Origin: Setoptus koraiensis
Lineage: Eukaryota > Animalia > Arthropoda
DNA: 64,000 nt
Assembly: GCA_048013815.1 (NCBI GenBank)
Contig: CM106585.1
Span: 4,340,001-4,404,000, forward strand
Direction of reading: 5' to 3'
The position numbers and the translations under genes were made by a program. Under the pieces are notes generated by a model, which was not told where the DNA came from, searched no databases, and was given only the letters and a program-made list of their open reading frames with translations. This document shows positions 11,290 through 36,400 of the stretch, piece after piece (the stretch's first letter is position 1; each line of letters begins with the position of its first letter).

Positions 11290-12355
11290 CAATGTGTGTG
11301 TGTGTGTGTTGTGTGTGTTTTTGACAATTTGGCGCCAACAGTGACAGACAATTTATTGTTGCGCAAGTGTTTATATACAGCACCAGTTCACTTGTCACAA
11401 GCTTGTCACTATATTACGATCGCTATTGGGTATTTGCGTATTGCATCAAGTGTAACCTTGTAAAGTGTAGCAACGTCCGCTCAACTCGACCGCGTGTAAC
11501 TCCGCGCACAGTACGTGTTGAACCAAGAGCCGCCGGGTCGCACTGTCAAAATTATCATAACGGAAATTAGTATTTGAGTGCTCGCGTCAGGCATCGGATG
11601 TTGTGTCGTGTTGTTTGCGTTGCACTTGTTGTCGTTGTTGTCGGTGTTGTTGATGTTGTTGTTGTTGTTGTTGCTGCTGTTGTTGTTGTTTATGGGTTCA
11701 CTTGGCCCAAACTGGCCAAGCAGTTATATAGTTGTATGGCTGTTATTATTTAGCGATTATTTCGGCTCAGTTTGTTTCAATCTTTGCACTTTCTTGATTT
11801 AAGCTCGCGCGCACCAACACTTGTTATGCTTGTCATACTCGTTATACTTGTTAGTTGGTCACACTACGACGCCAAGACCGTTATTTGGCGCTGTTCGTCG
11901 ACTTGACTTGACAACTGTGTGCAAATATATTAATATTATTGCGTAACTTTTGTTGTGTGCTAGTGTGCTGTGTCCTGCACATTCCGTCACATGGCGAGCT
12001 TATGCCGACGCTGATGCTGATGATGCAAATAGGCAATGATTCCGACAATGCAAACTGAGCGCCCACATTCGAGCAAATGCTGGCTCTCTCTCTCTCTCTC
12101 TCTCTCTGGCAGTTTGAACACTCAACACTGACGGCCCAACAAACAATCTCGACATCAATCGACGAAACCATATAGTTACGTAAGTCCGACGACGCTACTG
12201 GCTATGGCGCTTGCGCTCTCTCGCTCCCCCGCAGACACACAGGCAATTGGCGCACTGTCGGGACGTTCCTCTCAAAACCTATTTGTGCCAGCTGCCATGC
12301 GCCATTGACCAGTGCCTACCGTGGTCGCGCCCTCAGCGCCCCCCAGCGCCCGCCA

Positions 12356-15724: not shown

Positions 15725-18700
15725 ATGTCCACTAGTGAAAGTGATTCAGAATGTCCTCTGTCATTCACCAACATATTATTTGGTAATATTGGTCTAGACG
15801 GAAAATTGGAAGGCGACTATTTGGATGATGACTCGAAGAAAAATTTGCATGCTTTAAGTACTTTGGCTAATTTAGTAAACGATGAATTGGATCAAGAATT
15901 AAGACAATCATGCACCACTAGTAAAGACGACAATTTTGATGATGATGATGATGATGATGATAACGACAACGACGATAAAGACCACCAAGACAATGACGAC
16001 AAAAAGGAATGCACTAGTGCAACAAAACCATACCACTCTCCTATAGATTTCGACGATGATGATTCTCTAGCGGATGACGAAGACGAAAGCTATACAAAAA
16101 CTAACTTTAGTTATGATAGTAGCGCCCATCAATCCTCCTCTGAGCAACCTTCGGCACAAAGTCACGACCAAGAAAATGTAAATGGTCGCAATAATGAAAC
16201 TAATAAAAATCTATTGGCCAAAAATCAAACTGAGCATATCAATTCGCGAGCAACCAATGATGAACTAAATACTCCATTGGCGGCAATTCTACCTAGCAAA
16301 TATAAGGGTTGTGATGTGACGGAACTATTTCCTGGATTCAAACACAACAAAGTGCTACGCTTCTCCCGCCTTTTTGGTCCTGGAAAGCAATCTAGTCTAC
16401 CACAAATATGGAGTAGTGTCAGATCAAAGACAGTACCGTTTTCCTTGTCGCAACAACAATCATCGAATCAACCAACCTCATCTGTCAATAGTAATAAAGA
16501 AAAAGATAGCAAATCAGAAAGTAAAGAGAAAGATTTACAAGAAGCAAACGGTAATAAAAATAATGAATCTTCGCAAACAACAGTACAACCGTCAGCTGAG
16601 ATTGACCAATCAAAGTACGATCAGTATCTCGATTATGAAGTTGACGATGAAGAGATTTTTCTTCGAGCTACTCAATCAAATGAATGCCATTCAGGTAGCG
16701 ACAAAACTGATCCCAATCGAATCGATAGGAGCGCTGACTGGCGATATGGGCCAGCTCAGTATTGGTATGATTATTACAAAGTGCCAGAGGACACCCCAAC
16801 TTATGATTACGGATTCAAGCCCAAGCCAAAAGAAACAACCACTCATGTAGATGATGATCCGAAGGATCCAGACGACAGTTTTCACATGATTTGCCAGCTT
16901 CAATGGGAAGACGATGTTATCTGGGATGGTCACGATGAAGAGTCCAAAATCTTAGCCAAGATAGGCAAGAAGTGTCATGCTGCCGGCTGGGTTCCTTCAG
17001 CCATGCATAGAAAAGCCTCCGATTTTACACAGCAAGTGTCGAAAACCACTCTTCCTCAAGCGAACACACCAGCGCAGCCCATCGTGCCACCTACGCAAGG
17101 TCGCGGTCGACACTCTGACAAACATAATAAGCAGGTGCAAGAGGAATCCGATAGCACATGGTATTCCATATTTCCTGTGGAAAACGACGAGCTTGTGTAT
17201 GGATCGTGGGAAGATGATGTGATTTGGGATCCCAAAGCAATGCCAAAGATACCAGAGCCAAGGATATTGACACTGGATCAAAATGATGATAATATTGTTT
17301 TAGGTATACCTGATGAGATATTGCATCAGGAAATCGTCATGATGAACCATAAGAAAGCCATGGCTCAAAAAGAGCACAAGGAAAAGAAAGACCAAGTGAA
17401 GAGATCTCGAACCATTCTCAGTAAAGCGGGTATGATCGCCGAAGCCGAGCCGACTTCACCTCCACTCGCGGATTGTTTGGAGAAGCATCCTTGGAATATC
17501 TCAAATGACGAATTTTACAGTTACAAAACAACACCTGATGTTGCTCTCAAACCCAATGTTGGCAACCTAATACAACATTCTACGCCCGCTGTAGAACTGA
17601 GACAACCATTTTTCCCCACTTATCTCAACCTCACTAGACTGCGCCAGTTTCACAGGCGACCTCTCCGCAAATTTCGCAATGGAGAAATCGCGGACTCATC
17701 TCCTCATGGAGTGGAGCCTCTTGTTAAGCATATTAAACGTAGAGCTAAGCAACGCGAGCAAGAGAGATTGGCATCAGGCGGTGGCGAAATGTTTTTTATG
17801 CACACTGCAGAAGATCTCTCTGGTAAAGATGGCGAAATAGTGTTGGCAGAATGTTCTGAAGAGCACCCACCATTGCTCAATCAAATCGGTATGGCAACTA
17901 AAATCAAAAACTATTATCGTCGCAAGTTGGGATCTATGGAAGAACTTGATCCAAATAAATATGCTTACGGTGAACCTGCGCTCATCCATACCAGCCCGTT
18001 TCTTGGTAATCTTCATCCTGGTGAAAGTATTCAAACCTTTGAAAACAACATGTATCGTGCCCCTCTATATCAGCACGTAGTACCTGAAACTGATTTTCTC
18101 GTCATAAGAACTAGAGACAATTACTACATACGAGATGTTGAGACTGTTTTCACAGTAGGACAAGAATTGCCAATAGTTGAAGTGCCAGGACCCAACTCTA
18201 AAAAAGCTAACAACTTCATTAGAGACTTTTTGCAGGTATATATTTACCGACTATTTTGGAAAAGCCAAGATGAACCAAAACGTATCAAAATGGAAGACAT
18301 CAAAAAGGCATTTCCATTACATTCGGAGAGCTCTATACGAAAAAGACTAAAACAATGTGCTGATTTCAAACGTACGGGCATGGACTCGAATTGGTGGGTG
18401 CTGAAAAATCCATCGGAGTTCAGGCTGCCACCTGAAGCTGAAATCAGAGCCATGGTTACGCCCGAGCAATGTTGCGCCTACTATTCTATGTTAGCAGCTG
18501 AACAAAGATTAAAAGATGCTGGTTACGGAGAGAGATCATTGTTTGCACCTGAGGATGAAGATGACGAAGAGTTACAACTCAAAATGGATGACGAAGTGAA
18601 AGCTGCTCCCTGGAATACTACTCGAGCATTTATTTCTGCTATGAAACAAAAATGTCTTTTACAACTTTCAGGTGTTGCCGATCCCACAGGTATTGGAGAA

Positions 18701-20452
18701 GGTTTCTCGTATGTTAGAGTTCCTAACAAGCCACAACTACCACGTGAAGTAGCAGTAAAGGAACCACAGCCTAAAAAGACTGTTACCGGCACAGATGCCG
18801 ATCTTCGTCGTCTTAAACTCAGTACTGCCAAACAAATACTGAGAAAGCACGGAATACCTGAGGAGAACATCAAAAAGTTGGCTCGTTGGGACATTGTTGA
18901 TCTTGTTCGAACTTTGTCTACTAAGCAGGCACGATCTGGCGAAGAGTCGATGAGTAAATTTGCCAGGGGTAACAGATTTAGTATTGCCGAGCATCAAGAA
19001 CGTTACAGGGAGGAGTGTCAGCGCATCTTTGAGCTGCAAAATAAAGTTCTCACTTCTATTGAGGAACTCTCTACTGATGAAGATGAATCGGATGATGAGG
19101 AAGATTCTGATATTGAGGAGATGGGTAAAAACATCGAAAGTATTATTGCCAACAACAAGACTTCTCGTGATCTGTCTTTTGAAAAAGAAGAGGCCGAGAG
19201 GCGTGACTTCTACCAGAACTTTATGCTTAAAGATGAGTCAAAATCAAAAGGTAGCAAGGATGTTGAGGGCAACATGGACGAGTCATCGAATCTGGCCACT
19301 TCTACTGACAAGATACTCAATATACACAGGACTTTTGTCTGTCCAGATGGTACAGAATATAATAGGCTTGAAACGGTACGAAAACCTGGCGTAATAGACA
19401 CTTATGTTCGGATACGGAAGACAAAAGACGCTGATTTTATCAGTCAGTTCGCGACATCGCTTGATGAGCAGCAGCGTGAGGCAAAAAGAAAGGAAAGGCG
19501 TCGTCAACAAGAACAGATGAGGCGTAACAAGAGAAACGAACAACAAAAAGAGCATCAAGTCAAAGGTGTAGGGGGTGAACTGTCTCGCCAGTCTTCCTTT
19601 TACGCCGCAAACGACTCAGCACCCATGTCACCTCAGTCATTTACTGCATCTAGGTCACCTTCACTGTTTCTTGATACCAAATCACCTCCTGAGATATCTA
19701 TCAGTCCTGACGACAGTAGTCAGCCTGAGGTTCGCCGACGCAAGGAAAAGGACGGTTCGAAGCTACGTTGTGGAGCCTGCGGCGGTATAGGCCATATGAA
19801 GAACAATCGATCTTGCCCCAATCATAAAGCACCAATACAAGTTGCCATCACACAGGAACAACTCGAAGAAGAGGAAAGAACCCAGTTCCGTGAAAGTAAT
19901 CTAGTGAAAGTTGATGAAACTAAATTAGTTTTTAATAAAAAACTTTTCGATCAAGTTGAGGAAAACAGAAAGCGAGCACTTGTGCTCAAAGTTCCCAAGG
20001 AATGTCTGAAAAGGCGCCGAACTCAGCACACCGAACACTGTGATTATCTCCAGAAACCAGAGTACAAGCAAACCAACAGGCGACCAACTGACCCACTTGT
20101 GGCTATGTCTGTCATCTTTGAGGACGTACTAAAAGAGTTACGAGAGGCACCCAACACCCAACCATTTTGGTCTGCGGTCAATCCAAAATTGGTTCCTGAT
20201 TACTACAATGTTATAAAAAATCCGATAGACATACAAAAGATTAGGAAGAGATGTCAGGAGAAATACTACACTAGCAGAGAAGAATTTTCCAAGGATGTCA
20301 AGCAAATGTTGACAAATTCAGAGATGTATAATGGAGTTAGTCATCAGTACACAACCACTGCCCGTCAAATGGTAGAATTGTGTGAGCGACGCCTCTCTGA
20401 GAGATGCGATAAAGTAGAGGCATTAGAAAAGGCGATAAATGATAATGATTGA
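15725..20452 (+). CDS. TAF1: Transcription initiation factor TFIID subunit 1, intronless, 1575 aa, single bromodomain
   Basis: N-terminal TAND-like FTNILFGNIG..GKLEGDYLD; core motifs PWNISNDEFY, ECSEEHPPLLNQIGMATKIKNYYRRK, ESSIRKRLKQCADFKRTGMDSNWWVLK and APWNTTRAFI; zinc knuckle CGACGGIGHMKNNRSCP; bromodomain PFWSAVNPKLVPDYYNVIKNPID...NSEMYNG. Confidence 0.97.
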   Translation: MSTSESDSECPLSFTNILFGNIGLDGKLEGDYLDDDSKKNLHALSTLANLVNDELDQELRQSCTTSKDDNFDDDDDDDDNDNDDKDHQDNDDKKECTSATKPYHSPIDFDDDDSLADDEDESYTKTNFSYDSSAHQSSSEQPSAQSHDQENVNGRNNETNKNLLAKNQTEHINSRATNDELNTPLAAILPSKYKGCDVTELFPGFKHNKVLRFSRLFGPGKQSSLPQIWSSVRSKTVPFSLSQQQSSNQPTSSVNSNKEKDSKSESKEKDLQEANGNKNNESSQTTVQPSAEIDQSKYDQYLDYEVDDEEIFLRATQSNECHSGSDKTDPNRIDRSADWRYGPAQYWYDYYKVPEDTPTYDYGFKPKPKETTTHVDDDPKDPDDSFHMICQLQWEDDVIWDGHDEESKILAKIGKKCHAAGWVPSAMHRKASDFTQQVSKTTLPQANTPAQPIVPPTQGRGRHSDKHNKQVQEESDSTWYSIFPVENDELVYGSWEDDVIWDPKAMPKIPEPRILTLDQNDDNIVLGIPDEILHQEIVMMNHKKAMAQKEHKEKKDQVKRSRTILSKAGMIAEAEPTSPPLADCLEKHPWNISNDEFYSYKTTPDVALKPNVGNLIQHSTPAVELRQPFFPTYLNLTRLRQFHRRPLRKFRNGEIADSSPHGVEPLVKHIKRRAKQREQERLASGGGEMFFMHTAEDLSGKDGEIVLAECSEEHPPLLNQIGMATKIKNYYRRKLGSMEELDPNKYAYGEPALIHTSPFLGNLHPGESIQTFENNMYRAPLYQHVVPETDFLVIRTRDNYYIRDVETVFTVGQELPIVEVPGPNSKKANNFIRDFLQVYIYRLFWKSQDEPKRIKMEDIKKAFPLHSESSIRKRLKQCADFKRTGMDSNWWVLKNPSEFRLPPEAEIRAMVTPEQCCAYYSMLAAEQRLKDAGYGERSLFAPEDEDDEELQLKMDDEVKAAPWNTTRAFISAMKQKCLLQLSGVADPTGIGEGFSYVRVPNKPQLPREVAVKEPQPKKTVTGTDADLRRLKLSTAKQILRKHGIPEENIKKLARWDIVDLVRTLSTKQARSGEESMSKFARGNRFSIAEHQERYREECQRIFELQNKVLTSIEELSTDEDESDDEEDSDIEEMGKNIESIIANNKTSRDLSFEKEEAERRDFYQNFMLKDESKSKGSKDVEGNMDESSNLATSTDKILNIHRTFVCPDGTEYNRLETVRKPGVIDTYVRIRKTKDADFISQFATSLDEQQREAKRKERRRQQEQMRRNKRNEQQKEHQVKGVGGELSRQSSFYAANDSAPMSPQSFTASRSPSLFLDTKSPPEISISPDDSSQPEVRRRKEKDGSKLRCGACGGIGHMKNNRSCPNHKAPIQVAITQEQLEEEERTQFRESNLVKVDETKLVFNKKLFDQVEENRKRALVLKVPKECLKRRRTQHTEHCDYLQKPEYKQTNRRPTDPLVAMSVIFEDVLKELREAPNTQPFWSAVNPKLVPDYYNVIKNPIDIQKIRKRCQEKYYTSREEFSKDVKQMLTNSEMYNGVSHQYTTTARQMVELCERRLSERCDKVEALEKAINDND

Positions 20453-20483
20453 TTATCCTATGTACAGATATTGTAGATCTTTA

Positions 20484-21425
20484 TTAGATTTGTGTCTGAT
20501 TAAACCTAGGTGTTTCCTCCCAAAGTTTGAGACTGTGCAATCTATCAATCATTTGCTTGTCGTATGCAGGTGAACTAACTACAATACTTTTGAGGATCTC
20601 TTTCAACTCGTCGCGTCTCATTGTTAACTCCTGTATTTGGTTGAGCAATTTCTTTTTCAATTCCCTCTGACGCATCTCTTCTCTCTGAAGTTCCACGTTT
20701 CTTTCGTGTGTTGTGAGCTTTCTTGATGCTGAATTTTTGTTTCGCTTGTGCACTCCCGTCGATTTAAATTCACCGTTTGTCGAAGAAGTTTTCCTAATCG
20801 ATTTATTGGATGTTGATGTACCATTATGACTGGGTGCCACGGAGGACGGTGGTGAACCACTATAACTGGGTGCTGCGGAGGATGGTGATGTACCACTGTA
20901 ACTGGGCGCCACGGAGGATGGTGATGTACCACTGTAATTCGGTGTTACGCAAGAAGGTGATGCATTGTTCGTGTCGATGTTGTTAAAATTAACTTGTCCG
21001 TTGACTGCTTGCACATGATAATCAGGTTGCTGATATTGGCAGAACTGGGGCTGTTGGTGATGTTGATTCTGTCGATGTTGATGCTGTTGATGTTGTTGAT
21101 GTTGTTGATGTGGTTGTTGATGTAGTTGTTGTTGTTGATGCAATTGTTGTTGCTGTAGTTGTGGTTGTTGATGAGGTTGAGGTTGTGGTTGTTGCGGTTG
21201 CTGTTGGTATTGGTATTGCTGTTGTTGTTGCTGTTGTTGTTGCTGTTGTTGTTGTTGATGATCAACGTAACACAGGTTGTCATTGAAAGAGTAGATGGAC
21301 TTTGGATAGTCTTGTTCATAATCCAAAACCATTGTGATCACATTTGGAGTGTTAAGAGTATCATCATAGTTCGACATGAGGTTATTGTCGATATTGAGTA
21401 GAGGTGGTTTCGTTCTAGGTGACAT
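20484..21425 (-). CDS. Orphan Q/H-rich protein, 313 aa, with S/P-rich 12-aa repeats and a C-terminal bZIP-like coiled coil; paralogue of 32561-33085
   Basis: ATG-initiated ORF. The last 81 aligned residues are 37/81 identical and ungapped to the ORF at 32561. AATAAA overlaps the stop codon. Confidence 0.8.
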   Translation of the reverse strand: MSPRTKPPLLNIDNNLMSNYDDTLNTPNVITMVLDYEQDYPKSIYSFNDNLCYVDHQQQQQQQQQQQQQQYQYQQQPQQPQPQPHQQPQLQQQQLHQQQQLHQQPHQQHQQHQQHQHRQNQHHQQPQFCQYQQPDYHVQAVNGQVNFNNIDTNNASPSCVTPNYSGTSPSSVAPSYSGTSPSSAAPSYSGSPPSSVAPSHNGTSTSNKSIRKTSSTNGEFKSTGVHKRNKNSASRKLTTHERNVELQREEMRQRELKKKLLNQIQELTMRRDELKEILKSIVVSSPAYDKQMIDRLHSLKLWEETPRFNQTQI

Positions 21426-24365
21426 AGTGGCGACGGAAGGAGATGAGTATTATCTTGATTATTGCGCTTGGCGTTAAATGAGTTAACAAGTTTCTTTTTG
21501 GTTGCTAGGTCGAATGTTATGTCAAGTTCAGGTAACGTTTATCCACATTATTGGGTCTTGTCATGAAGATTTTGCACAAGTTTTGCAATGAGCATTATGC
21601 AACAAGAGCATTGCTTGTTTGTTGTTTACTTGCTGGATGTTGATTGTGTTGCTTGTCAGGATTGCCTCAGATTGTGATACACATGTAATTGTTGTTTAAA
21701 AGCGTGTTGTGTTTCGTTTAATGGCTCGCAATCTAACGCAATCGCTTCTTTATATATCTCGTTGTTTGCCTAGGCCTACCACAGCGAACATTAGGGGTAG
21801 ACGCATGCGCGTATAAACATTTACTGAGGTATACAGTTTGTGTGTGCGTGAAAATGCTAATTTAAAAGTTTTTGTTTATATCGCCAGGGCGGCGCACTTA
21901 TATTCTCTTCATATGAAGCTGATTTTGCAGTGCTCATAAGCTTGAATGCACGCCTAAAACAGAATCGAACGAAACAAAACATTTAGCGTAACGCTCGGTG
22001 ATAGTGTGCACATTCAAACGCACTCTGCGCGCTCCTGGCGGAACAAAAAAGAACTTGGAGTTTGGCATTGGCAACAGCGCGCACACACACACACACACAG
22101 TATTAGTGTGTCAAGTTGAAGTGGAGCCTTGTTTTTGTGGCAGCCAGCTCCGGGCATCATCGTATCGGATAATCCGAGACTAATAATAACTGACTACTGA
22201 CAACTTGAGAGTACTATTGTCTGCGATCATCATCCAATAATTGCTTCTGTGTCACCCTGAATGGCTGTTGTTTGCGTGGAATTCGATCGAATCAAGTTGT
22301 ATATCCGCTGTTCTCGTTATTTATCCGGCTCGACGACGTCACAAGACAGACAACAAACAACTATTAAAGTTAAAATTTTAAATAAACGGACGGCGCCAAT
22401 CAATTAGCAGCCAGTCTAATGAGCCTCTCAAGTGAAGAGTCTCAACACACAGCTGTGTGTCTTCCTGGTACAGACAGACAGACACACATATACGGCTTAT
22501 GTGTGTCTATACACGAGCGATTAGCCGAAACAACAATGACGACACTAACCGATCACTCCAATAGCGAACGTCAGCTGCGTTTTATATACATGCCAATGTT
22601 AACACTCTTTTGCTGTCTGTCTGCATAACTTTTCAGCATCCTCTAGCTAATGATAATAATTGCTCAATCAATTTCATTTCTCGTGCCGTCTACCCATGAT
22701 GATGTAATAGACACAAACTCGCTAAATGTACCAATGGCACGTGTGAACGGAAACTGGCCGATGCGTCACGCATCATCCAGTATAACACTGGATAATGTAT
22801 CATTATTATTGTGGGGCACAAGTTTTGTTGGGCTCGTCGACCAGTCGCATGCACAATGTTCGTTGGGCAAACAAATTGCGACGCCCAGCCAGTGACTCTC
22901 TCAAGTCGAGCTTACATTTTCCAGTGCTGGCCTCTCGTTGGCGCCTCGTAGTAGACACTGCCGTGGCGCCACTTGCTAACGATCGGCGTTGGCTGTTCGT
23001 GTGCTTCTTTTTCGGCCGCGATGTTCTTTTTAACCCCCACTGTCTAATTTACAATTCATCACTAAAGTTATTGTCTGACGATACTGGTGACGCGTGACGC
23101 ACATCTCGCGAGTTCCAACTTCGAGCCACATCTACACCAACTTGTCAATTGTCGACCGATTCACCCACTGGATCACATCTTGCACAATCAACTGTAGTGC
23201 TCAATAATAGTTGTGTCAAGATTGCGATGACGCTCATCATACAGACACATACAATGAGCACAATCGCTGACGAAAAAAGGCTTGAACGAAAGCTCCATCA
23301 TTCGCTTCGTCATTAGCTTACATCATTCGTGTCTATTATTAATTGACAACTATGTTGCTATGATATCAAAATACTTCAACTGGTCCGTTCAACTTGAAAT
23401 TTGCTCACTTTTAGCTCTGCCAGTGACTATTAACTAGCAACAAGTAGGCACACCACTTGACTTGTGTCCCAAATCGCAGTCGCTGCGTGTAGGTGCGCAA
23501 TTGGAGCAATCGCATTGATTTTATCATCGATTGGACAATCTAGATTAGCTATTTATGACAGCTAAACAATATGAGCGGGTAAAACCAATTACTAATGCTT
23601 GCTGTTGTCTTACTAAACCCCTAATGAGCTGTCCCTAATGAATTGTGCTGCCATGGACTGGTCTATTTGATCTACAATAATATCCATGATAATGAACAAT
23701 AAATATACCTCATATCTATCTTTGCTCTGTCTATTTGGACACAACATTTTAGATAACATCAGGAGAAAAATAAGTTCAGCTGAAGACAAAGTTCAATGTA
23801 AATGTAACGATTCACCAGCCACTTCTTGGAATGGCTCACAACATTTACAAGAATCGATTCGATGATATTGTATTTGTTTATCCAAGAACATTATTGTTGG
23901 AGTTATCGCCTCTGTAAAAGATCCTACACACCGATCATGACTCATGAACCATTAGATAAACACAACAATAAATACTCAAGCACATTAACAATTCCTGATT
24001 ATAAAATAGAACAGAGAATGTCCCAGAGTCATTTAGATTTGTGTATGTCGCTTTCCTGAACAACAAATAAAGAGATTGTGTTTTTTGAAAAAAAGGAAAA
24101 ACATCTAGAATCTAGATGGTTTTGGCCGATTGTTTGTGTCAGTGTGAGAATAATTCAGCGCGAGTTCCTAGAATCGGAGTACAACAGCCATTTCCTAATG
24201 ATGTTGATTATCCGCTCTACATTTGTGTCTATAGGTAGTTGTGAACAGCAATGATCTATTCGCTCCGTCATCGCGAGAATAGAAATACTATTCTTGCTTC
24301 CTCAAAGAACTATTCTCACTATAATGTTGTTACATCACTGTATGAAGTAGTGTAGTTCAACCAAT

Positions 24366-24711
24366 TCAAACGATGCTGCAGGATGCTACTATAGTGTGTA
24401 TATCTATTTTCATGAATGAAAAAATGTAGAAGCATTCGCGAAAAGAGTTTAAACTAGCTGCAACTGGCATCAAAACAACAAGCATGATGTAATACATAGA
24501 CCATACGCAACAATGAATGAACAACGCCTTTACTATACTGTAGTAGCTAATCTTGTTGTTGTTCTTCCTCATGCTCTATCAAATGGAGAGAACAGCGATT
24601 TGATTCTCGGAATTCTCTGCTCTGACTAACTTTCAATTCTTGGAAAAAGACTAACCAGTTTGTTTACAAGACGCTCACCTCTGCGGCAACTCTCTGACGG
24701 CGATGAGTCAT
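24366..24711 (-). CDS. Possible small spliced hydrophobic protein (exons 24711-24679 and 24575-24366)
   Basis: ATG at 24711, GAG|GTGAGC donor, 103-nt intron ending TTTGATAG, then an in-frame hydrophobic ORF (ALFIHCCVWSMYYIMLVVLMPVAASL). No family recognised. Confidence 0.2.
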
Positions 24712-25717
24712 ACTATCTAAATTCAAACATATACTCAATATATATATATATATATATAATCATATACTCACATATAATAATATATTCGAACAAATATACT
24801 TCAAACCAAATATAAATACACTGTGTAGATATTATCCACAATCTGGTATACCCTTGTGCATACATTTGTTCTCTCTTTCCTGTCTTTAAATACTTTTACA
24901 TGAGTGCTACCATTACGTAAGACCCCTCAAGCGGCATTTGCCCTCATATTTGCTCGATAATATTATGACCCATAAAGAACATCACCAGATGATGAATATT
25001 TACGAATACATTCCAGTCACGAGGATCTTCTGTAAGGATCAATCAATCGGTTGGAACATCTGGTGAACTAATTAAAGCGTTGGGACGAATATGTTGATCG
25101 GTGATAGTATTTTTAATCTAGCTTGTTGGACGAGTCCGACGACTAAACTCCACGTCGGATACACCATCGAGCAACAAACAAAAGCTATCGCTAGCAAACA
25201 ACATTGTTAGCCATTGAACGCTTCCATTTTCATCTACCTATAGGACTGATTTTTTGGAAATTACTCTCTGTGAGACATTTGCTGCTGTTTATTATCTTGA
25301 GGACATACAATATCAGCCCAACTTGATTATTTTCAGGCAGAAAAACGCGCAGCAAGCGTTTTCTCTTCATGTCTCTCCATTCTTCGAATTGATTTTTCCA
25401 GATAAACATGCAAGGTAGAACGTTGTTTCAGTTAGGAAAGTAGTAGACTTCTTATATTGCTTAGTTGGCTTAATGAAGTTTAACCATGTTATTTGTGGTG
25501 GTTTTTGATCTCTGATGGGCGTGCATGTGGCTTCTTATGGACAAAAAAATCATTGACACAGCTTTGGATGAGACTTGCCACTTGTTGATGCACTTGCGTC
25601 TGCTAAGCAATAGTGATGGATGCATTCAAAAATGGATTCTTTATCTATAAATTAACATAATTTAATATATTTATTACTTGCTACCTCGACCACTTTTTTA
25701 TCCAAGTTGATCTGTAA

Positions 25718-26953
25718 ATGTTACAACAATCAACAGGCGATAAGCCTCCTAATGATGGCCATCGACAACATAATACACAGCCGGAATCGACTTTCGATTG
25801 CAATAATGTTACCATGGAAACAATCAAGGTGGGCTCAAGGAAAAGCAATCTGGCAATAATACAAACGAAAAAGGTCATTGAGGAATTAACTATAGCCCGT
25901 GAGAGAGATAATGAAACTAGTCCGCCCTTGCAGACACTCAATAAAACTAATAAATGTAATTTTGAAATTGTCGCAATGACTACAACGGGCGACGATATCC
26001 TCAGTCAATCTCTAGTAACTATCGGGACAAAATCACTATTCACTCGTGAGCTGGAAACTGCCCTCCTTGAAAAGCAAATCGATTTTATAGTTCACTCTCT
26101 GAAAGATTTGCCTACAACTCTACCCGAAGGTTGCGCAATTGGCGCTATTCTTCCCAGAGATGATGTGAATGATGTTTTAGTTTTAAAGAATTCCTTACAA
26201 AATCAATTGGATCCATTATCGCTCTTACAGGGAACTCACCAGACAGGTTGTGTGAAAATTGGAACATCATCTCAGCGACGGATTGCATTATTGAGAAGGT
26301 GCAACAAAAACATAGAATGTAAAGATATCAGGGGCAACCTCAATACAAGATTCAAGAAACTAGACGATACCACAAGTGGGTATTCAGCTATCGTATTGGC
26401 CGCAGCAGGCCTCGATCGCATGAACATGTCGGAAAGGGCCTCGCTTATCATGGATACGATAAATGATGGTCGTTTAAGTGATATTAAGTGGCCATACGCT
26501 GTAGGACAAGGAGCAATAGCTGTTGAGTGCCGCAAAAACGATACAAAAACTCTTGATCTACTTAGACCGGTGGTTTGTCTTAAGACAACCTATGAGGCAG
26601 CTGCAGAGAGGGCAATGATGAAATCCTTAGAGGGAGGATGCTCAGTGCCAATGGGAGTTAGGAGTAGGTGGATAAATGAACATACCCTGGAACTAACTGG
26701 AACAGTACTATCGTTAGATGGTCAGGAGCTTGTGGAATGTTCATCCAGCAGGGATCTCTCGGTACCAGGAGACACTACATTGGTGAGTGAATTATCAGAT
26801 CTCACTGGAATCGTTATTTATAGTGAAAAAAGTTTGACCTGCCACCTCCATCTGGCAGCTAGTGTTAAATTAGGCCATGAAGTGGCGATGAAAATGTTAG
26901 CCAGGGGCGCCAAGAAAATATTAGACAGCGCAAAAGCAATTAATTTAAAATAG
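25718..26953 (+). CDS. HMBS: Porphobilinogen deaminase (hydroxymethylbilane synthase), intronless
   Basis: GSRKSNLAIIQT, KSLFTRELE, DFIVHSLKDLPT, DIRGNLNTRFKKLD, YAVGQGAIAVECR, and cofactor cysteine in LEGGCSVPMG. Confidence 0.97.
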   Translation: MLQQSTGDKPPNDGHRQHNTQPESTFDCNNVTMETIKVGSRKSNLAIIQTKKVIEELTIARERDNETSPPLQTLNKTNKCNFEIVAMTTTGDDILSQSLVTIGTKSLFTRELETALLEKQIDFIVHSLKDLPTTLPEGCAIGAILPRDDVNDVLVLKNSLQNQLDPLSLLQGTHQTGCVKIGTSSQRRIALLRRCNKNIECKDIRGNLNTRFKKLDDTTSGYSAIVLAAAGLDRMNMSERASLIMDTINDGRLSDIKWPYAVGQGAIAVECRKNDTKTLDLLRPVVCLKTTYEAAAERAMMKSLEGGCSVPMGVRSRWINEHTLELTGTVLSLDGQELVECSSSRDLSVPGDTTLVSELSDLTGIVIYSEKSLTCHLHLAASVKLGHEVAMKMLARGAKKILDSAKAINLK

Positions 26954-27088
26954 AAAAGCTTGAAACATCAAGCGATTATCCCCATTATTCTAAGATGGCG
27001 ATTCATAACGGCCGTTGGCATGTTGTCGTTGAAACTTGTAGACTTTATTTTCTTTTGATATTTATTACTGTGCTAAGGCAATAAAGTA

Positions 27089-27580
27089 TCATTGGCCTTC
27101 TTGCGGCATTGTTTTAATAATATCAGAGTCACCTGGGTCCGTGATGCTGAGAGCACCCACTCTGTATAGTTTACCGCAAGCGGTTCCTAGATCGATGTTG
27201 CTTCCTGAGAAGTGATGCACGCCGGTCTTAGATAACATAGCATAGTACTCTATTTCACTTCTTCTCAATGGTGGTGTGTTTGAAGCGATTATAACTAGCT
27301 TGGCCTTACCCTAATGCATAAATAGAGGATGGTAGTGAAGAAAGAAAGTGTTACATAATGTTACGACCGTGTTCTCTGGCCTGGGCGACATATGTCGCTC
27401 TGGTTATAGTTATGTGAGTTAGCACTGGTATTGAATTTGCTGAATACTTACAAGACGGAGAGTTTTAAGTGTCTGCCTAACACCACAGCAGTATTGTCCG
27501 GATTTCATAACTAGGGCCAACCTAGAATTGATACTCTCAGTGGCTGCCTTCTTGGCCTTTGATTTGTCAGCGGGTGCCAT
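27089..27580 (-). CDS. RPL30: 60S ribosomal protein eL30, 116 aa; exons 27580-27452 and 27310-27089, 141-nt intron
   Basis: Manual translation gives [43 protein letters not shown]|[79 protein letters not shown] donor, TTAG acceptor, downstream AATAAA. Confidence 0.97.
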
Positions 27581-27946
27581 ATTGTTGGTTGTATATGAAA
27601 GATGTGTTGCTGATTATTTAAATTACAATTCCTCGCTTGTAGCGCTGCTAATATCTCCTACCAATGATAGCTGGGTGGCAATATAATAATATTGATAATA
27701 ATAATTTGCTTCTAATCGAAGGAAGAAATAATGAGGTGGAATAGGACAAATGCATGCAGATGTCTGACCATGAGTTTAGCGCTGATGCCGGATATCACGT
27801 TGTGTTGATAGTGAATAGTTCACTATTGCTCCAGTAGTGCTGAAGCTACCACTAGAGTTTTAATTTCATAGAACGCATGCGTACCTGGCAAAGGGCGCGA
27901 GATTCGAGAGTGAGTGAAAAAAAAAGTCCACGCTGAGCGAATTGGT

Positions 27947-27951
27947 AAAAA
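27947..27951 (-). terminator. Pol III T5 terminator after the tRNA
   Basis: TTTTT on the minus strand, 5 nt after the tRNA 3' end. Confidence 0.7.
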
Positions 27952-27955
27952 GAGA

Positions 27956-28028
27956 TGCCTCCAGTGAGATTTGAACTCACGACCTTTGGTTTACAAGACC
28001 AACGCTCTAACCCCTGAGCTATGGAGGC
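27956..28028 (-). tRNA. tRNA-Thr(UGU)
   Basis: GCCTCCATAGCTCAGGGGTTAGAGCGTTGGTCTTGTAAACCAAAGGTCGTGAGTTCAAATCTCACTGGAGGCA: 7-bp acceptor stem, anticodon stem TTGGT/ACCAA around CT-TGT-AA, and a GTTCAAATC T-loop. Confidence 0.96.
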
Positions 28029-28599
28029 TCGATATATGGAATCGAGATGCTAGTGATTTTAAATCGAGCAGCCGTGTCATGTAAGCCACTGGGCTCAAAT
28101 GCAAGCTGGCCAAACAAGTGGATGGTGGCTGAGCCGTTGCTGTTCGTTTTGGGAGAAAAGAATAGCACTTTCGTGTGTGTATCGCAACATTTGTTCGTCA
28201 GACAGTTCTGTCAGATATTTTGAAAGATGTTTTGTAAGACATTTTGTAAGATTATTTGTGCGAGATAATGTTTAAGCGCGTGGATAATAAATGCGTGTAT
28301 CTACGTGTATCCAACGACAATATAATTAATGATAAGAAATGTAACGACAGTAATCATACTAATAATCATACTAATAATAGAGGCAAACGATAGGATCGGA
28401 AAGACAACGAAAGCAACAATACACTATAGTGTAATGATAAGCTACGGGCGCGCAGTGCTGATTGCTAGGTGAAATAATTGAGCGCGCAATGATGAAGTGA
28501 GCGCGCCTAGAAATGCACAAAAACAAGCGCACGTTTTTTACAGTATACCAGCACCAGTACAATAGTGTATGAGTCTCTGTACTATGAGATATACATTGA

Positions 28600-29350
28600 A
28601 AACACACACACACACACAGCACAACAGATTGTGAGTTTGCAAGGCAAGTTGCTAAGCCGTGTATATGATATCGGCTGCCATTGCTAGTATGGCGTATTTG
28701 GCGTATACGCAGCATGTAGAATTCGAGTATAGCAACCCGACAGGATCGAATGCTGCACTATTTCCACATACAACATACTGCAAACTGCATGCATTATAAC
28801 GTATATGTGAGTGGATGCAATGCGCGCCCTTGTGCGCTGCGCTGCAGTCAAATGGTAAAGCCCATTTACTACAGTGCTACAGTATTACTGCAGTATTACT
28901 GCCAGTATGTGAGTGTGTGTGTGCGCCAATGTATTATCAGCGAACGTGTATTGCCGCCCTATAGTGCATGGTGCAGCGTATACTTGGTGCCCGAGTTTTC
29001 CAACGGTCGCCATTGAAGTGCACATGAACATGCACATGCAAGAACAAGCACAGATAGAATGAACACACAAACTGCATTCTCATTGGCTGCTTCTGCTGCG
29101 TTTGCTGCCGCCACTGCTGCTGCTGCTGCTGATAGAAGTTGCAAATGGAGATAACGAAGCAAACAGAATCGTATTTGCTTTACATGCAGAGAATATAGCG
29201 CAGTTTGCACCATAGTACACTGTACACATATATATAGTGAACGCTGTGCATTTCGTCCATACCAGTATGAACGTTGTAGAATCCAATGGGAAATGAAGAG
29301 GATCCACACACACATTCAGGCGCACACACTGGCTCACACACTGGCTCACA

Positions 29351-29389
<39 letters not shown>

Positions 29390-30090
29390 TAACGAATAGA
29401 ATTCAAGCAACGAATCGAGCACACACACACACACACTAATAGTTGCTATACATTAACGTGCTCAACATTGGTTGGCTATATCCAACGAACGTTAACAACA
29501 ATAGAGATATCGAACGAACGTATACGAACGTACGAACGAACGAGAAAACGAACGAACGAACGAACCATCGAACCAACGAACAAACCAACGAACGAACTAA
29601 CGGACAAATCATCAGCATCTTCCATACTCTGCTCCCACTGCTACTAGCGCTACTGCTTCCACTGCTGCTGCTGCTGCATTAGAAAATACGTTGCTGTGGC
29701 ATTGCTCATAGACGAACACTGCTATACCCATAGTATACGAGAGAAGCAATAACGAACACACACAGAATAGAAAATATATATATACACACAGTATAACAAT
29801 ATCAAAAGTATTCGACGTTTGCACGTTATCACTTTGCATAAGCTACCACGCTAACAATTAACCTAAAATATTCATATATTTGCATCATAAAACTTGACAA
29901 AAAGAACTTATCAAACATCTGATAATCATTCAATCAAATGTAAGTAAGATAATAAAACTCCCCATACAACTAATAGACATGATAATATAATTTATCAACA
30001 CTGATAATACACACTCTGTTCAGTCTGCTTGTGTGCAATACAATAAGACCGAGAGACAGATAGAGAGACAGAGAGAGGGAGAGATGATCA
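28600..30090. repeat. Microsatellite-rich intergenic block: (CA)n, (CTG)n, degenerate (AACG)n at ~29511-29602, and (GA)n
   Basis: Read directly from the sequence. Confidence 0.8.
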
Positions 30091-30591
30091 ACAAATAGCT
30101 ACGAAATTCGCAATCATCAAAGTTACAAATATTATCAAATGAGAGCTTTATTCTTATTAGTGATCGACAATTGAATCAGTTTATTATCATAATCACAAAA
30201 TATAGTTATCTATGTATTTTTATCACACAAACACACACAAGTGACAGTGAACATTTAGAATGGAGAAAAAGCCCGCCCAATAACTGACCTATAGCTAAAA
30301 GCTAGATGCTTATTGCATGTTGCTATTACTTGATAGAGCTGTCTCATGACAGCATCTTATCAATGCATGGCCGCCTATGCGTGTCACAATTGGCGCCTAA
30401 ACTTTAGAGTATTCCTCCAACGAGTTGAACTTTTATCATTTTAGTTCATTCGTCGCTTATGACCCCATAGTGTCATCCTATTTTCTTTTATTATATTTTA
30501 TTTTATATTTTACAATATTTTATTAATTTTTTATTTTGTCTATTCATTTCAATCAACTACACAATCTGAATAGAAAATTAAATAAATAACA

Positions 30592-31316
30592 ATGGCCAAA
30601 GCTAGTAAGGATAACAAACCCAGAGGACGTATGTCTTCGTACGCTTACTTTGTTCAGAAAACCCGAGAGGACTTCAAGAAGAAGCATCCCAATGAGAATG
30701 TTGTCTTTTCCGAATTCTCGAAAAAGTGCTCAGACACATGGAAGGTAAGCTAATCACAATAATCCTAGCAAAGTTTATCAAGCAACCACTTGCATACATG
30801 CTGCATGCAAGCCACTTACCTGATCTATCAACTATCATATTTTAACGCTCTCAAACCTATATAATTTCGTTTGTTTTTTGTTTTTGCAAATAGAAAATGA
30901 GCGAAAACGAAAAGAAGAAATACGTTCAATTGGCCGACAAGGACAAGAAACGTTACGATTCTGAAATGTCCACCTATGTACCTCCTAAAGACTCTGGAAA
31001 GGGCAAGAGAGGTAAGAAGGCCAAGAAGGACCCTAATGCACCAAAGCGCGCCCTGTCAGCATTCTTCTGGTTCTGTAATGACGAAAGAAACAAGGTGAAG
31101 GCCATCCTACCTGCAGGATCTGGTGTTGGCGATGTTTCCAAAGAGTGTGCCGCTCGCTGGAACAACCTAAGCGCCTCTGCTAAATCCAAATACGAAGCTC
31201 TGGCTGCAAAGGACAAAGCTCGTTATGAGAAAGAAATCGCTAGCTACAGGAAGAAAGCTGAAGGTGGTGTTTCTGTCAAGAAGGGTAAGGCAAAGAAAGG
31301 ATCCGACGTTGATTGA
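30592..31316 (+). CDS. HMGB: HMGB/DSP1-type double HMG-box protein, 191 aa; exons 30592-30744 and 30894-31316, 149-nt intron
   Basis: Box [15 protein letters not shown]...[15 protein letters not shown]|KMSENEK; box [17 protein letters not shown]...KDKARYEKE. Splice sites AAG|GTAAGC and AATAG|AAA, phase 0. Confidence 0.95.
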
Positions 31317-32560
31317 ACTAAAGTTGAATCTAAGCACACTTAAACATACCTATTATTTACATAGATATACATATAAATATAACATAAAAAATATATATAT
31401 ACACAAAAGATGAAAATATATATCAAAAACCGAAACAAACCACCATATAAGCAAAAGCAACAATAACATCATGAATTGATTGTAACTATTCAAAGTATTA
31501 TTACAACTTATACATCAACTACGAACTATTAACTGTATAACTCTCAACTGTCAGCATGTATTAATGATTAGAACAACTTCCCTTATTGGACTTAAACTAG
31601 CACACCATCAATAATATCTAAAAGTCAGAAAATGATTGTCCAAAAACTAAGGAATAGATGGTTTTTACTCAGTTACTAAGACGAGAAAGATTTTTTGTTC
31701 AAATATTCCGAGACAAAATACGTTCAAATACATACTCATCGATATGCACTTACAAGACACAATCAGGCGAGTTGAAGACTATAAGTTCTTTATTCTGACA
31801 TTATCAATCCTATGATTTGTCTGATGAAGACATAGTTCGTCGACAACACATGAATAACCAAGAACACCACAGAACAACAAAGTATGCTGAGTGTGATCAT
31901 GTAAGTTATGTCATGATCAAGAATTAATCCGGTTGAACTAGAACAAAGGTGATGTACAAATATGGAAACGGAATAACAATGATTGATAATCTAATTATAT
32001 CAAATATAAGTTCACTCATCTGATGTTCTAGAAAAAAGAGAGTTTTGGTGCGACCAGCTGGAACTCATGACTATATGACTTAATAAGCTGAATATACTCA
32101 AATTGATTAAACTAAAATAAATAATTACACTAAAATCCTGAACGTGTTTAATTTTTTGAACAGTCTCTTAGCGGTGGTATTTGGTTTCAATTCGGAGCAG
32201 ATACACTGGTTTTATGAGACCCAGTATGATAAAGTGAGGTGGAATTCACAAGATGGGGTATAAATTATTCCAAACAAATGTGAAAATCTCAATTATAGTA
32301 TGTTGGCTATAGCAATTTTGTGCTGACCATTTTGAATTGACTGTCTTGGCATGCACGCGTTTTTCGGGAATGAAGTTGTGCCAACCAGTTGCGCGCATTT
32401 GTTCTGGCAAGTTTTGCACAACAATTTGCTCTCTTTCCGGACGCCCAACTTTGGCCTCTTACATTGCACATTTCGTTTGTAAGACAAACGATGTCCAGTA
32501 ACGAAGGATTTTGTTCCTGATTTTTATAATTGACCAAAAATTACTTCAACCTTTAAAGAT

Positions 32561-33085
32561 ATGGAACAATTACTAAATAATTACAGAATTATGGACGACC
32601 AATTAGCTTATCTGGATATTCTATCATTGCAACCAGAGTTTAATATACAAGAAGTATGGTCATTTGTGCCTGCCGAAACAAATCAATCGCAAAATTCTCT
32701 ATATCCCATGGTTGATCCTAATGAAGTTTGTCCATTGCAGCCAATTACCGACGAGGTTTGTTCGCCAAAGGCGCGAGCTAGCTCCTCTAAAATGGAGGTA
32801 AAGCATAGTGCTCTCCACTGTCAACAAAAACAGGGGATATCCAGCAGCAAAAAATTGACAGTTCGTGAGAGACAACTCGAACTTCAAAGACAAGAAGCTC
32901 ATCAATTGCAGTTGCGTGATTACTATTTGACAACTATACGCAATTTAGAAGCAAAGTGTAACAAACTGAGAAACATTTTGAAGGATCTGGTAGTCACCTC
33001 GCCCAAGTTCGACAATCAACTTATGGATCAACTCGATAGTTTAGAGTTATGGAAGGATTGCAATAAGTTCAATCCGACACAATAA
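32561..33085 (+). CDS. Orphan 174-aa protein with a C-terminal bZIP-like coiled coil; paralogue of 20484-21425
   Basis: ATG ORF. Shared motif KLT..ER..ELQR.E..Q..L....L..I..L......L..ILK..VV.SP..D.Q..D.L.SL.LW.....FN.TQ. AATAAA overlaps the stop codon. Confidence 0.8.
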   Translation: MEQLLNNYRIMDDQLAYLDILSLQPEFNIQEVWSFVPAETNQSQNSLYPMVDPNEVCPLQPITDEVCSPKARASSSKMEVKHSALHCQQKQGISSSKKLTVRERQLELQRQEAHQLQLRDYYLTTIRNLEAKCNKLRNILKDLVVTSPKFDNQLMDQLDSLELWKDCNKFNPTQ

Positions 33086-33124
33086 AAGATATCTTAGACA
33101 CGGTCAAAATAAATTTTCCTGGCC

Positions 33125-33455: not shown

Positions 33456-36400
33456 TCATTGAGGTGGGCCATTGGCTGGGCGTTGCATACTGATTGCAGT
33501 TCTCATGTAAATAGGTTGACCTCCTGATTGTGACACAGCCGGATGAATTGGACTAGAAAACACTTTGACATGCTCAAGTTTTGATTCCTCAGAAGAGTTG
33601 GTGTTCAGATATTTGTTCAATATGGAGAATATCTGCGAGTTTAGAACCTGAAATCGTCTAATTCTATCCACCATGCGCTTCAATGGGACACCTTTGACTA
33701 TCTCATCTTTTCCATCAACTCTCTGTACTTTCAAGAGATGATAACTGAAATCTAAAGCTTCGAATCTTTTCTGCTGGCCCAACAATGTAATCATGACACA
33801 GCCAGCCCAATTAAGGCCCTCCCCAAAAAGTTGTTCTATAGTAAATTCGCCATCCCCCACTGGAACACAATAAATAAATTGGAGTGCCGACCAGATTCGG
33901 TGAAATTCAATACATTCATCCACGTAAATAACCACAGGTGGATTTTGGCTGGATCCAATCCACACTGAGGCCTGGTCTCTATTTTCCAACATGAAACCTT
34001 TAATCTTGTTTAGAACTGCGTCAATAATAGATAAACCACAGCATAACCGTTCCGTTGTCAGTAAATCTCCCTCGTTAGCCAAATGGGCTTGCTCCTCAGT
34101 GCCAAAGTTCTGAATGTTTGTCAATACTTGCAAAGCAGCATACTTTTGCTCTAGACGTTTTATCTTATTATCGTGTCGCTCGCCATCTTTGCAGAAAGGC
34201 CTGGGCAAGATGTTTTGGAATGGTGCTGCCTGCAGCAAATCACAAACTTCCTCCTGAGATAGGCTGTGCTCGATTAACATACAGAAAAGTATAGCATTAC
34301 CAACTTCCCGAAACGATTGAAACATCTCGGTTTTGACATCAGGGTATTGAATCACCTCCTTCAACTGTGCTTGATAGTAGCCCAATACGCCAGTAGAACC
34401 GTAATCGTAAAGTGGTAATTTGCAAACTTTTGGCATGATATTTGTGAGGGTCTTACAATACTGTGTTATGTTCCCTTGTAGAAGAGACTTGATTATCTTT
34501 AACAAGTGATCTACAACAACTGCCACCCCTTGATATCCCAGCAATCTTGCCATGGCTCGCAAATGTGGCGTTCCTATGAAGTTAGAGTGCAGTGAATATA
34601 TCGCCGAATAAGCTATGTTCAAAGCTTTGATCCCGTATAGGTAGTATGGCGGTAATTGGGATAGTGTTGACAACTTATCTCGTGCATGAACGCTTTGATG
34701 TGGTGTAAGATTGGGAGCAAAGGGAGGCATCTTGACAAAACGATTTGTCGAAGAATTGTAGCAGTAAGTAGGCAAAAAAGAGAATGTCAGTTCACAAAAT
34801 ATGTGTAACGTTATTCTACCATATGGAGCAGATACGTTCCTGTTGGCCTCATGAAATAGTGAGTCAAATGGATCTAACAAGACATGCTTGCTCAATAACT
34901 TGTGGGCGTATCGGTTGACATCTATCAGACCTTCAAGTTCGATTATATCAGTTAAACTTCCCTCTTCAAATCTTGTAATAGCCAACTCCAAGCTTTTTAA
35001 CATTGAAGCATTGAGGCGCTGTGCAATCAATCGGTTGAGATCTATCGTTCTGCCCAAGAGCTGTAAATGTCGCTGGCTCAACAGTGTTCCATATCTATTA
35101 GCTTGGGGCCAATTAACTTTAATATTCATAGCCGCAGCTTCCGCTCTGAATCTTTTGTCTAAAAGTATGCTTCCGGCTAGGTGTTTGTAATAGGCATATA
35201 TCTGTTCACTGAGTTTGTAAACGAATTGATCGAAACAAAGATTCACCTCAGCTTCGACTTCATCGTATAAGAATTGCTTACAAAATTTAGTTAACGCACA
35301 ATGAGCACTGTCATTGTACAGATCCAAAGGGTACAATATACATTCTATCATGGCTGGATCTTTACTTTTGAGAATGTGATCCGTAAGTATTGAAGGAAGG
35401 GACATTTCAATGGGAAATTGTATTCTTCTTCCCATGGTCATTTCTAGATAATATTCGCGATACCATAGTTGAGATAAATCACAACATTCACGTAGTGTTT
35501 GGCTGAAGTTCAATAGATAAGGCCAGTAGAAGGAATCTTTTAAGAATTCTTCTATTGCGGCAAAAGATGGCCCGTCTATGTATTTTCTCAAAGTGCTTTT
35601 ATCACCATGTGCTTTGCCGCTAACTAGAGATTCTAGCATAGTTCTAACCATATATAGCTGAGTTGATGAAGGACCCACATTCCTTCTGGGTACTACAATT
35701 TGAAATTCTGATATAGCCGGTTTAGACAAATCTGATTTGTTCGCTTGATCAATTGGATCTTCAATGCCTTTCATCCAGTCTGCACAAGTACCTCGAACGC
35801 TTTTCAAGAACAACCTTATCATGTCATCCTTCTTCAGGATAGCCTTTCGAAGTGGTTCACGTAGGTCTATCTGAATAAAGTCTTGCAGTTTAGCGTAAAT
35901 TGACCTTTTTATAGCATCACTGAAAACAGTTTCCATTCTGTTCATGAGTACTTGCAAACCTTTGACCATAGCGATCAATTCTATCAGGGCAGATTTTTCT
36001 CCATCGTTATAGTTGTAGCGCGTGGCGCGCTCGTATTCTTCTGCGTCTTGGGGACACTGGTGATTTTGATGATGATCGGTGGGATGCATGAGTTTCCATG
36101 AATATAGTTCTGTCACATGACTTGTCCAATCTGATAGTAAACGCAAACCCTGCAAGGCAAGTTCCAAGAGTTGTCGATTTTCAGCGTCAGTTCGTGAGGT
36201 TTCTTTTATGATGATTGTGGCTTCATTTGAATGCCGACTCAATTCCGATATGTAGATAACATACTTCTCTCTTATTTTAGGTAGATATTCTTGTATTTCA
36301 GCTTGAGAAGATGATGTTGAGCTATTAGAACAGAGGGGCCATTTTTGTGGATCAAAGTTGACCATTTTTTTGATGTACGTTACAAATGGCGCAATTTGCA

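Follow-up and report, generated by a model that had tools for sequence, protein, structure and literature searches.

The window examined here is a stretch of 64,000 nucleotides from Setoptus koraiensis (Arthropoda; assembly GCA_048013815.1, contig CM106585.1, positions 4,340,001 to 4,404,000 of the forward strand). Its subject is a pair of related protein-coding genes, referred to as gene A and gene B. The best overall explanation, to which a probability of about 60% is given, is that these are inverted-duplicate zipper genes of a new mite-clade family, the products of which would act as partner-binding nuclear adaptors. On the basis of the sequence searches described below, the family is undescribed and confined to a single, diverse clade within the acariform mites. 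This clade most probably represents the gall and rust mites, Eriophyoidea, judging by a named relative, tree position and genome style.

The open reading frames (ORFs) of both genes run from ATG to stop (Table 1). The last 81 residues of the two proteins align without gaps at 37 identities, with L/Y, L/L, L/L and I/L at alignment positions 29, 36, 43 and 50, and the BLASTP E-value of 3e-25 is far beyond chance. This alignment reproduces exactly the ORFs, the 37/81 identity and the heptad positions given in an initial annotation of the sequence. The similarity of the N-termini is not significant (E = 0.71), and no third gene copy was found in the window by tblastn. An AATAAA overlaps the stop codon of each gene, another feature that the annotation had described and that is confirmed here. 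The same overlap is present in the orthologue of gene B, but five neighbouring genes of the window and three distant family members all lack it. As it is common to A, B and the orthologue of B only, it is best read as an inheritance from before the duplication. A signal peptide, and with it a secreted effector, was ruled out by eye, the N-termini being acidic and not hydrophobic.

Table 1. Position of genes A and B, their parts and the adjoining genes within the window.
Feature	Position	Strand	Basis or remark
Gene A: single-exon ORF, 313 aa, fast-evolving paralogue	20484..21425	-	ORF listing
Gene A C-terminal family domain: basic patch, long zipper helix, Ser-Pro, short helix, L-W tail	20487..20744	-	Alignment
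Gene A in-frame 36-bp tandem repeat, 4.3 copies, Ser/Pro-rich 12-residue unit	20808..20962	-	Tandem Repeats Finder and translation
Gene A poly-Gln/His tract, CAA/CAG-type repeats	21050..21260	-	Tandem Repeats Finder and translation
AATAAA over gene A stop codon	20480..20485	-	Sequence read
Gene B: single-exon ORF, 174 aa, conservative paralogue, ancestral CYFIP-linked site	32561..33085	+	ORF listing
Gene B N-terminal family motif, residues 27-60, aromatic/acidic, ends V-D-P-N-E-V-C-P	32639..32740	+	hmmsearch
Gene B C-terminal family domain	32828..33082	+	Alignment, AlphaFold2, dN/dS
AATAAA over gene B stop codon, kept in sister species	33081..33086	+	Sequence read
TAF1	15725..20452	+	Pfam; tail-to-tail with A
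Porphobilinogen deaminase (PBGD)	25718..26953	+	Pfam; head-to-head with A
CYFIP	33456..37331	-	Pfam; tail-to-tail with B

A profile of the A and B domains was searched exhaustively with HMMER against 1.84 billion representative proteins. This search, proposed in the initial annotation from the 81-residue alignment, retrieves the family: 28 proteins score below E = 1e-3, with E-values from 2e-41 to 3e-6, and the domain is C-terminal in all 28. A further search with a 15-member profile returns 18 members, eight of them additional. The members come from Logan, ENA or JGI contigs, with the exception of KAG9509916.1, a hypothetical protein of the eriophyoid Fragariocoptes setiger. This protein has an L-E-L-W tail in common with A and B, and the three group together in the domain tree (support 92/84). 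No Pfam domain is on record for any family member. A word-indexed homologue search with the C-terminal region of A came back blank, an outcome probably limited by query length and shared words, and an ESM Atlas search with gene B returned nothing (0.78). Neither A, B nor TAF1 has an exact counterpart in the collections of proteins and contigs. The initial annotation had taken two orphan paralogues to define a lineage-specific family. True paralogues they are, taxon-restricted and without a Pfam model, but the relatives from HMMER and the profile search total about 36 sequence clusters, and the family is not defined by the pair.

The range of the family can be placed through PBGD. In the tree of this gene, every contig that carries a family member falls, together with the window, in one clade of 45 rows inside Acariformes, with a value of 100 in the Shimodaira–Hasegawa-like approximate likelihood ratio test (SH-aLRT). 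The clade stands apart from the Astigmata references (Blomia, Sarcoptes) and from the Trombidiformes references (Brevipalpus, Leptotrombidium, Halotydeus). The protein genes adjoining A and B in the window are long, uninterrupted ORFs, and the genes here are intron-poor. This agrees with Eriophyoidea, since more than 80% of the genes of the eriophyoid Aculops lycopersici are intronless (PMC7738191). It also agrees that eriophyoids are known to contaminate plant sequencing runs (bioRxiv 10.1101/2024.05.17.594625).

Family members share a common plan. It begins with an aromatic/acidic N-terminal motif of about 30 residues, which contains a conserved Trp/Phe and the sequence P-M-F-x-L-V-D-P-N-(D/E)-I-C-P. 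Between this motif and the C-terminal domain lies a variable, disordered and often Gln-rich linker followed by a P-P-P-x-L stretch, and the family also has a middle basic block, Q-R-x-E-R-L-K-A-R-L. About 80 residues long, the C-terminal domain has a Lys-rich patch within R-K-x-S-G-K-K-(M/L)-T-G-R-E-R-Q-L-E-L-E-R-Q-E and continues into the heptads, which are followed by an invariant S-P, by (E/D)-Y-N-x-Q-M and by an L-L tail that is acidic. The heptad register is family-wide and extends over about 3.5 heptads, with I37, C44 and L51 at position a and Y33, L40, L47 and I54 at position d.

Both A and B align across the whole of the family C-terminal domain. Gene B keeps the family plan except for the middle basic block. 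Its N-terminal motif scores 17.0 bits, compared with 10.9 bits for the best of 1000 shuffles, against a hidden Markov model (HMM) of the motif made from 25 other members, with A, B and P0121 (the orthologue of B in a sister species) left out. Gene A does not match this model (-2 bits) and keeps the C-terminal domain only, having lost both the N-terminal motif and the middle basic block. The initial annotation was right that the N-termini differ: the motif is carried by B and not by A. Within its domain, gene A retains five of five invariant family columns and departs from the family at three near-invariant positions (R13H, E41T and C44R). The 36-bp repeat of gene A encodes a Ser/Pro/Tyr-rich 12-mer, P-S-Y-S-G-T-S-P-S-S-V-A. 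This unit recalls the heptad of the RNA polymerase II C-terminal domain, and the tract may be a phosphorylation-rich linker.

One member, P0126 (L004/L005 10001-11110), occupies a different locus, beside a DEAD-box helicase / photolyase, in a very compact and intronless genome that is found in three metagenomes. The family N-terminal motif begins near residue 123, so the start as called probably lies about 120 residues too early.

Given the family alignment, AlphaFold2 predicts the domain as a single helix of 46 residues (residues 12-57), with a block-mean predicted local distance difference test score (pLDDT) of 88-97, and a second, weaker helix at residues 59-71. The full-length prediction for gene B consists of a helix at residues 2-22, a disordered middle and helices at 101-146 (block-mean pLDDT 85-95) and 148-161. 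The coiled coil anticipated by the initial annotation is supported both by conserved heptads and by one confidently predicted long helix. Structural searches did not point to any class of protein. Foldseek, which the annotation had also named, was run against the PDB without a match. VIA-align against the PDB and an Atlas shape search returned only generic long helices, with many tied coiled-coil rows and a best Z of 5.9; these rows span all functional classes, bZIPs among them, and are not discriminating. Among the Pfam matches and the PDB sequence and profile matches, which are poly-Gln or coiled-coil noise only, a weak one to Baculo_gp64 covers the coiled stem of that protein and is not meaningful.

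The residues that flank the hydrophobic core of the zipper bear on how the helices would associate. The g-e′ pair 43/48 is Lys/Arg-Arg/Lys, a basic-basic combination, in 29 of 30 members, and hydrophobic residues are found at e/g positions 34, 36, 50 and 55. At the central a position, four members carry Asn. By the pairing rules of bZIP zippers, a basic-basic g-e′ pair disfavours parallel homodimers. Together with the hydrophobic e/g positions, the 43/48 pair makes a heteromer or a higher-order bundle likelier than a parallel homodimer.

The initial annotation had assigned the two genes to a bZIP-like type of the CHOP/Xrp1 kind. The family does possess one feature of bZIP proteins, a Leu-type heptad zipper of about 3.5 heptads, but no formal sequence test supports the assignment. 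The Pfam models bZIP_1 (PF00170), bZIP_2 (PF07716) and bZIP_Maf (PF03131) are not among the matches listed for 30 members (whole-sequence E <= 1, domain E <= 10). When the family profile is compared with the PDB, which holds many solved bZIP chains, none is recovered at E <= 10. Neither large search (HMMER or profile) contains a bZIP or CHOP relative, and no canonical bZIP was found in the window and the fetched loci. The N-x7-R/K signature and the R-x9-L spacing are absent in every register of the 30 members (d = 33/40/47/54), and a regular-expression search gives the same result; on this point, the missing canonical N-x7-R, the annotation was correct. The 25 residues before the zipper (consensus 8-32) contain six K/R and five D/E, a net charge of about +1, and are not strongly basic. 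As the bZIP sequence tests failed, the family is not filed under bZIP.

A variant of the bZIP assignment is considered improbable. The family could be a true, highly degenerate C/EBP-class bZIP, CHOP/DDIT3-like or Xrp1-like, from which the DNA-contact residues have been lost. Such a protein would pair with a canonical bZIP (C/EBP-gamma/Irbp18, ATF4 or a PAR factor) and thereby redirect or block it. CHOP/DDIT3 is a C/EBP-class bZIP with a defective basic region, which pairs rather than binding DNA alone. The mite proteins resemble it in layout: they are small, their zipper lies at the very C-terminal end, a Lys/Arg patch interrupted by Gly directly precedes the helix, and the N-terminal region is activation-like. 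The basic-basic g-e′ pair, as it disfavours the parallel homodimer, and the Asn at the central a position of four members, as in bZIP zippers, are likewise in favour of it. In addition, the language-model neighbours of P0126, a typical member, are arthropod bZIP_2 clusters (0.90, 164/256 features). This similarity is rated as a lead only: the ten best named matches belong to one clan, but a third of shuffled proteins behave in the same way.

Other properties separate the mite family from CHOP/DDIT3. There is no bZIP_2 match, neither of the large searches recovers a CHOP-like protein, and the segment before the zipper is almost neutral in charge. The partly hydrophobic e/g positions are untypical of bZIPs, the zipper is short, and the family has its own invariant Ser-Pro and second helix past the zipper. 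A precedent for taxon-restricted, fast-evolving C/EBP-class factors is provided by Xrp1, an insect-restricted bZIP of this class with Irbp18 as its partner; it was initially taken as Drosophila-specific, and CHOP is without a recognisable fly orthologue (PMC6946401). Xrp1 is comparable to the mite family in its taxonomic restriction, its rapid evolution, its C-terminal zipper and its separate conserved N-terminal block, but it keeps a consensus basic region and an AT-hook (PMC6946401), neither of which is present in the mite proteins. Also in favour of a degenerate bZIP, fewer Pfam bZIP_2 domains have been reported for Aculops lycopersici than for the species with which it was compared (PMC7738191). 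An excess of bZIP binding words in the window is on the same side: it holds 16 PAR-type D-box words (RTTAYGTAAY), where 1.6 would be expected. The D-box sites are not, however, concentrated near A or B.

C/EBP-type palindromes (TTRCGYAA) are in excess as well, with 20 matches where 6.7 would be expected. Words of both types lie mostly in the GC-rich first 14 kb of the window, where three sites occur within about 50 bp at 11240-11290. Further ones are located at 40726, 63425 and elsewhere, with no specific link to A or B.

Two other classes of known protein offer parallels. The dimerisation inhibitors that lack a basic region, namely the Id proteins for bHLH factors and the designed A-ZIP dominant negatives for bZIPs, share with the mite family a dimerisation helix that is devoid of DNA-contact residues. 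The A-ZIP design principle is an amphipathic Glu/Leu helical extension placed before the zipper. The mite family has a similar extension, which differs in being about neutral and not strongly acidic. TSC22/GILZ proteins are likewise small, with a short zipper, a Ser-Pro-Glu motif close behind it and no basic region. The conserved blocks are out of register with those of the mite family, and the TSC22 Pfam model (PF01166) is not among the matches listed for any member.

The preferred explanation, a partner-binding nuclear adaptor, follows the layout of the proteins. The A and B proteins would assemble through the long helix. The succession of a short motif, a disordered Gln-rich linker, a basic patch and a zipper is the layout of a nuclear regulatory adaptor. 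A nuclear role, presumably exerted through partners and not through DNA contacts of its own, is suggested by the short motif at the N-terminus, by the disorder of the Gln-rich part and by the basic patches. As the family has no DNA-contacting basic region, it would act by binding partner proteins. Since the duplication, A may have become a partner of B, or the two may have divided the partners between them.

It has also to be considered whether the adaptor is concerned with transcription at all. The family could be a coiled-coil adaptor, for instance in a complex for cytoplasmic trafficking, of the cytoskeleton or of kinetochore type. It would then be either a clade-specific invention or the orthologue of a small, conserved coiled-coil protein that has diverged beyond recognition. 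The structural matches, being generic long helices of all functional classes, would accommodate this, and the hydrophobic e/g positions suggest the formation of bundles. The sub-threshold noise in Pfam comprises poly-Gln or coiled-coil families, and the weak hits to the Sas-6 C-terminal coil, Snapin/Pallidin and Med30 point in the same direction. Yet no known small coiled-coil family is detected at any threshold, either by Pfam with the whole protein and the domain or by PDB sequence and profile searches. The Gln-rich disorder, the Lys/Arg patches and the acidic-aromatic motif are more typical of nuclear regulators, and the language-model neighbours are transcription factors. A non-transcriptional function is rather improbable, slightly more so than a degenerate bZIP.

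There is also a more far-reaching and speculative proposal. It may be that gall mites evolved basic-region-less zippers as natural dominant-negative or specificity-switching partners of C/EBP/PAR-type bZIPs, in a genome whose non-coding DNA is rich in the words of those factors. The inversion-linked poly-Gln second member would then pair with the first or antagonise it. The odds are well against this elaboration.

Gene B is clearly a constrained coding gene under purifying selection. In comparison with its orthologue, the ratio of non-synonymous to synonymous substitution rates (dN/dS) is 0.146 for the whole gene, 0.253 for its N-terminal half and 0.072 for the domain, with a dS of 0.46. The neighbouring genes range from 0.014 (CYFIP) to 0.205 (PBGD). 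A ratio near 1, which in the initial annotation would have counted against its interpretation, is thus not what gene B displays.

Gene A is probably a functional, rapidly diverging copy. Its end branch in the family tree amounts to 2.08 changes per column, compared with about 0.6 for B. A branch of this length might also be expected of a decaying or non-functional duplicate, the frame of which has stayed open by chance or through its repeat-rich composition, leaving B as the sole functional member. The loss of the N-terminal motif and the middle basic block, the three altered near-invariant positions and the low-complexity repeats that make up two thirds of the length of the gene agree with decay. 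Against this, the frame of 313 codons is intact at 43% identity to B, and the five invariant columns, the Ser-Pro and the heptad hydrophobic residues are retained. The AATAAA overlapping the stop codon is also intact, and the 36-bp repeats are all in frame. Decay of gene A is accordingly regarded as unlikely.

The origin of the pair can be read from the order of the genes. The window has the order TAF1(+), A(-), PBGD(+), a tRNA, HMG(+), B(+), CYFIP(-), a small ORF(-) and adh_short(-). The tail-to-tail position of each gene with a large conserved gene, which the initial annotation had recognised, holds for A with TAF1 (31 bp from stop to stop) and for B with CYFIP (370 bp). Four other mite species (loci L007/L008, L009, L010/L011 and L012) have Snapin(-), PBGD(-), X(+) and CYFIP(-) in succession, where X is a single family gene. 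This ancestral-type X is head-to-head with PBGD and tail-to-tail with CYFIP. In the window these linkages are split, with PBGD head-to-head with A and CYFIP tail-to-tail with B, in opposite orientations. Since the gene is single elsewhere, and its linkages are both split and oppositely oriented here, A and B are an inverted duplication of one ancestral gene. For seven further members, the longest contig has exactly the length, to the base, of one with a PBGD hit, which suggests linkage in the same manner. A transposon or viral origin was ruled out by microsynteny conserved in five species.

The unit of A and PBGD is inverted relative to CYFIP, such that A and B form inverted repeats on either side of PBGD. 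To the right of CYFIP, the window is collinear with the other species. Staggered-break inversions duplicate the sequence at their breakpoints, as is established for inversions in Drosophila, and inverted repeats around PBGD are the pattern expected of such an event. TAF1, a derived neighbour, lies beside a family gene only in the window among the species examined. Because the window lacks Snapin, and TAF1 and HMG have newly come to lie next to the pair, the locus must have been rearranged at least once more.

The duplication can be dated relative to two related species. In a sister species (Logan run SRR33593474), locus L002 has the order HMG-box, B orthologue, CYFIP and adh_short. The B orthologue there, P0121, is 88% identical to B. 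The region upstream of PBGD in the same species (L001) aligns to within about 290 bp of the start of A, where the contig ends. The shared order of HMG, B and CYFIP, along with this upstream alignment, places the duplication before the split of the two sister species. The domain tree, with weak support (92/29), would put it after the split from F. setiger.

Several points weigh against the explanation as a whole. The assignment to Eriophyoidea is based on one named relative, the tree position and the style of the genome rather than on a marker gene. Selection on A is deduced only from its intact frame and retained invariant residues, and the grouping of A with B is weak by one of two measures (92/29). 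Finally, a simple staggered-break inversion alone leaves the missing Snapin and the new TAF1 and HMG neighbours unexplained.

Eriophyoid mites are major crop pests and have some of the smallest and most streamlined genomes among animals. The loss of many conserved transcription factors has been reported for them (PMC7738191). A regulator-like family that is specific to the clade and maintained by selection is a candidate for some of the replacement or rewiring of this circuitry. In addition, the locus illustrates cleanly, in nature, a duplication tied to a local inversion, in which one copy is conservative and the other has lost a motif and gained low-complexity tracts. The practical value is modest for now, and taxon-restricted coiled-coil families are common.

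A number of minor observations concern the surroundings of the two genes. X and CYFIP, which lie on opposite strands, share 18-58 bases at their 3′ ends in three of the four other species (L007 10812-10840; L009 10640-10657; L010 3730-3787). The rearrangement may have removed the 3′ end of TAF1 (20050-20486), given that the position of A is a rearrangement breakpoint. The spacer between A and PBGD measures 4.3 kb in the window and 0.1-0.7 kb in the other species. Within it, about 1.9 kb upstream of PBGD (23817-25678) can be aligned to L001 2028-3866 at 70.7% aligned identity, near the neutral expectation, and this block contains no ORF of more than 100 aa. An Rfam scan of the interval from 20 to 34 kb detected the tRNA only (27956-28028, minus strand).

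The HMG-box ORF (30897-31316; L002 997-1719) starts inside an apparent two-box HMGB protein. A separate HMG-box call of 53 aa lies just upstream in L002, which makes an intron and a further exon upstream probable for this gene. The 812 bases past its stop codon (31317-32128) are 87% identical to L002 over 822 columns, well above the synonymous-site identity of the flanking genes (56-73%). This stretch may represent a long 3′ untranslated region under constraint, a regulatory block ahead of B or a non-coding RNA. Between the tRNA and the HMG-box gene, in the rearranged interval from PBGD to the HMG-box gene, positions 28900-29450 consist of GT/CA-rich low-complexity sequence with pseudo-ORFs of Cys-Val repeats.

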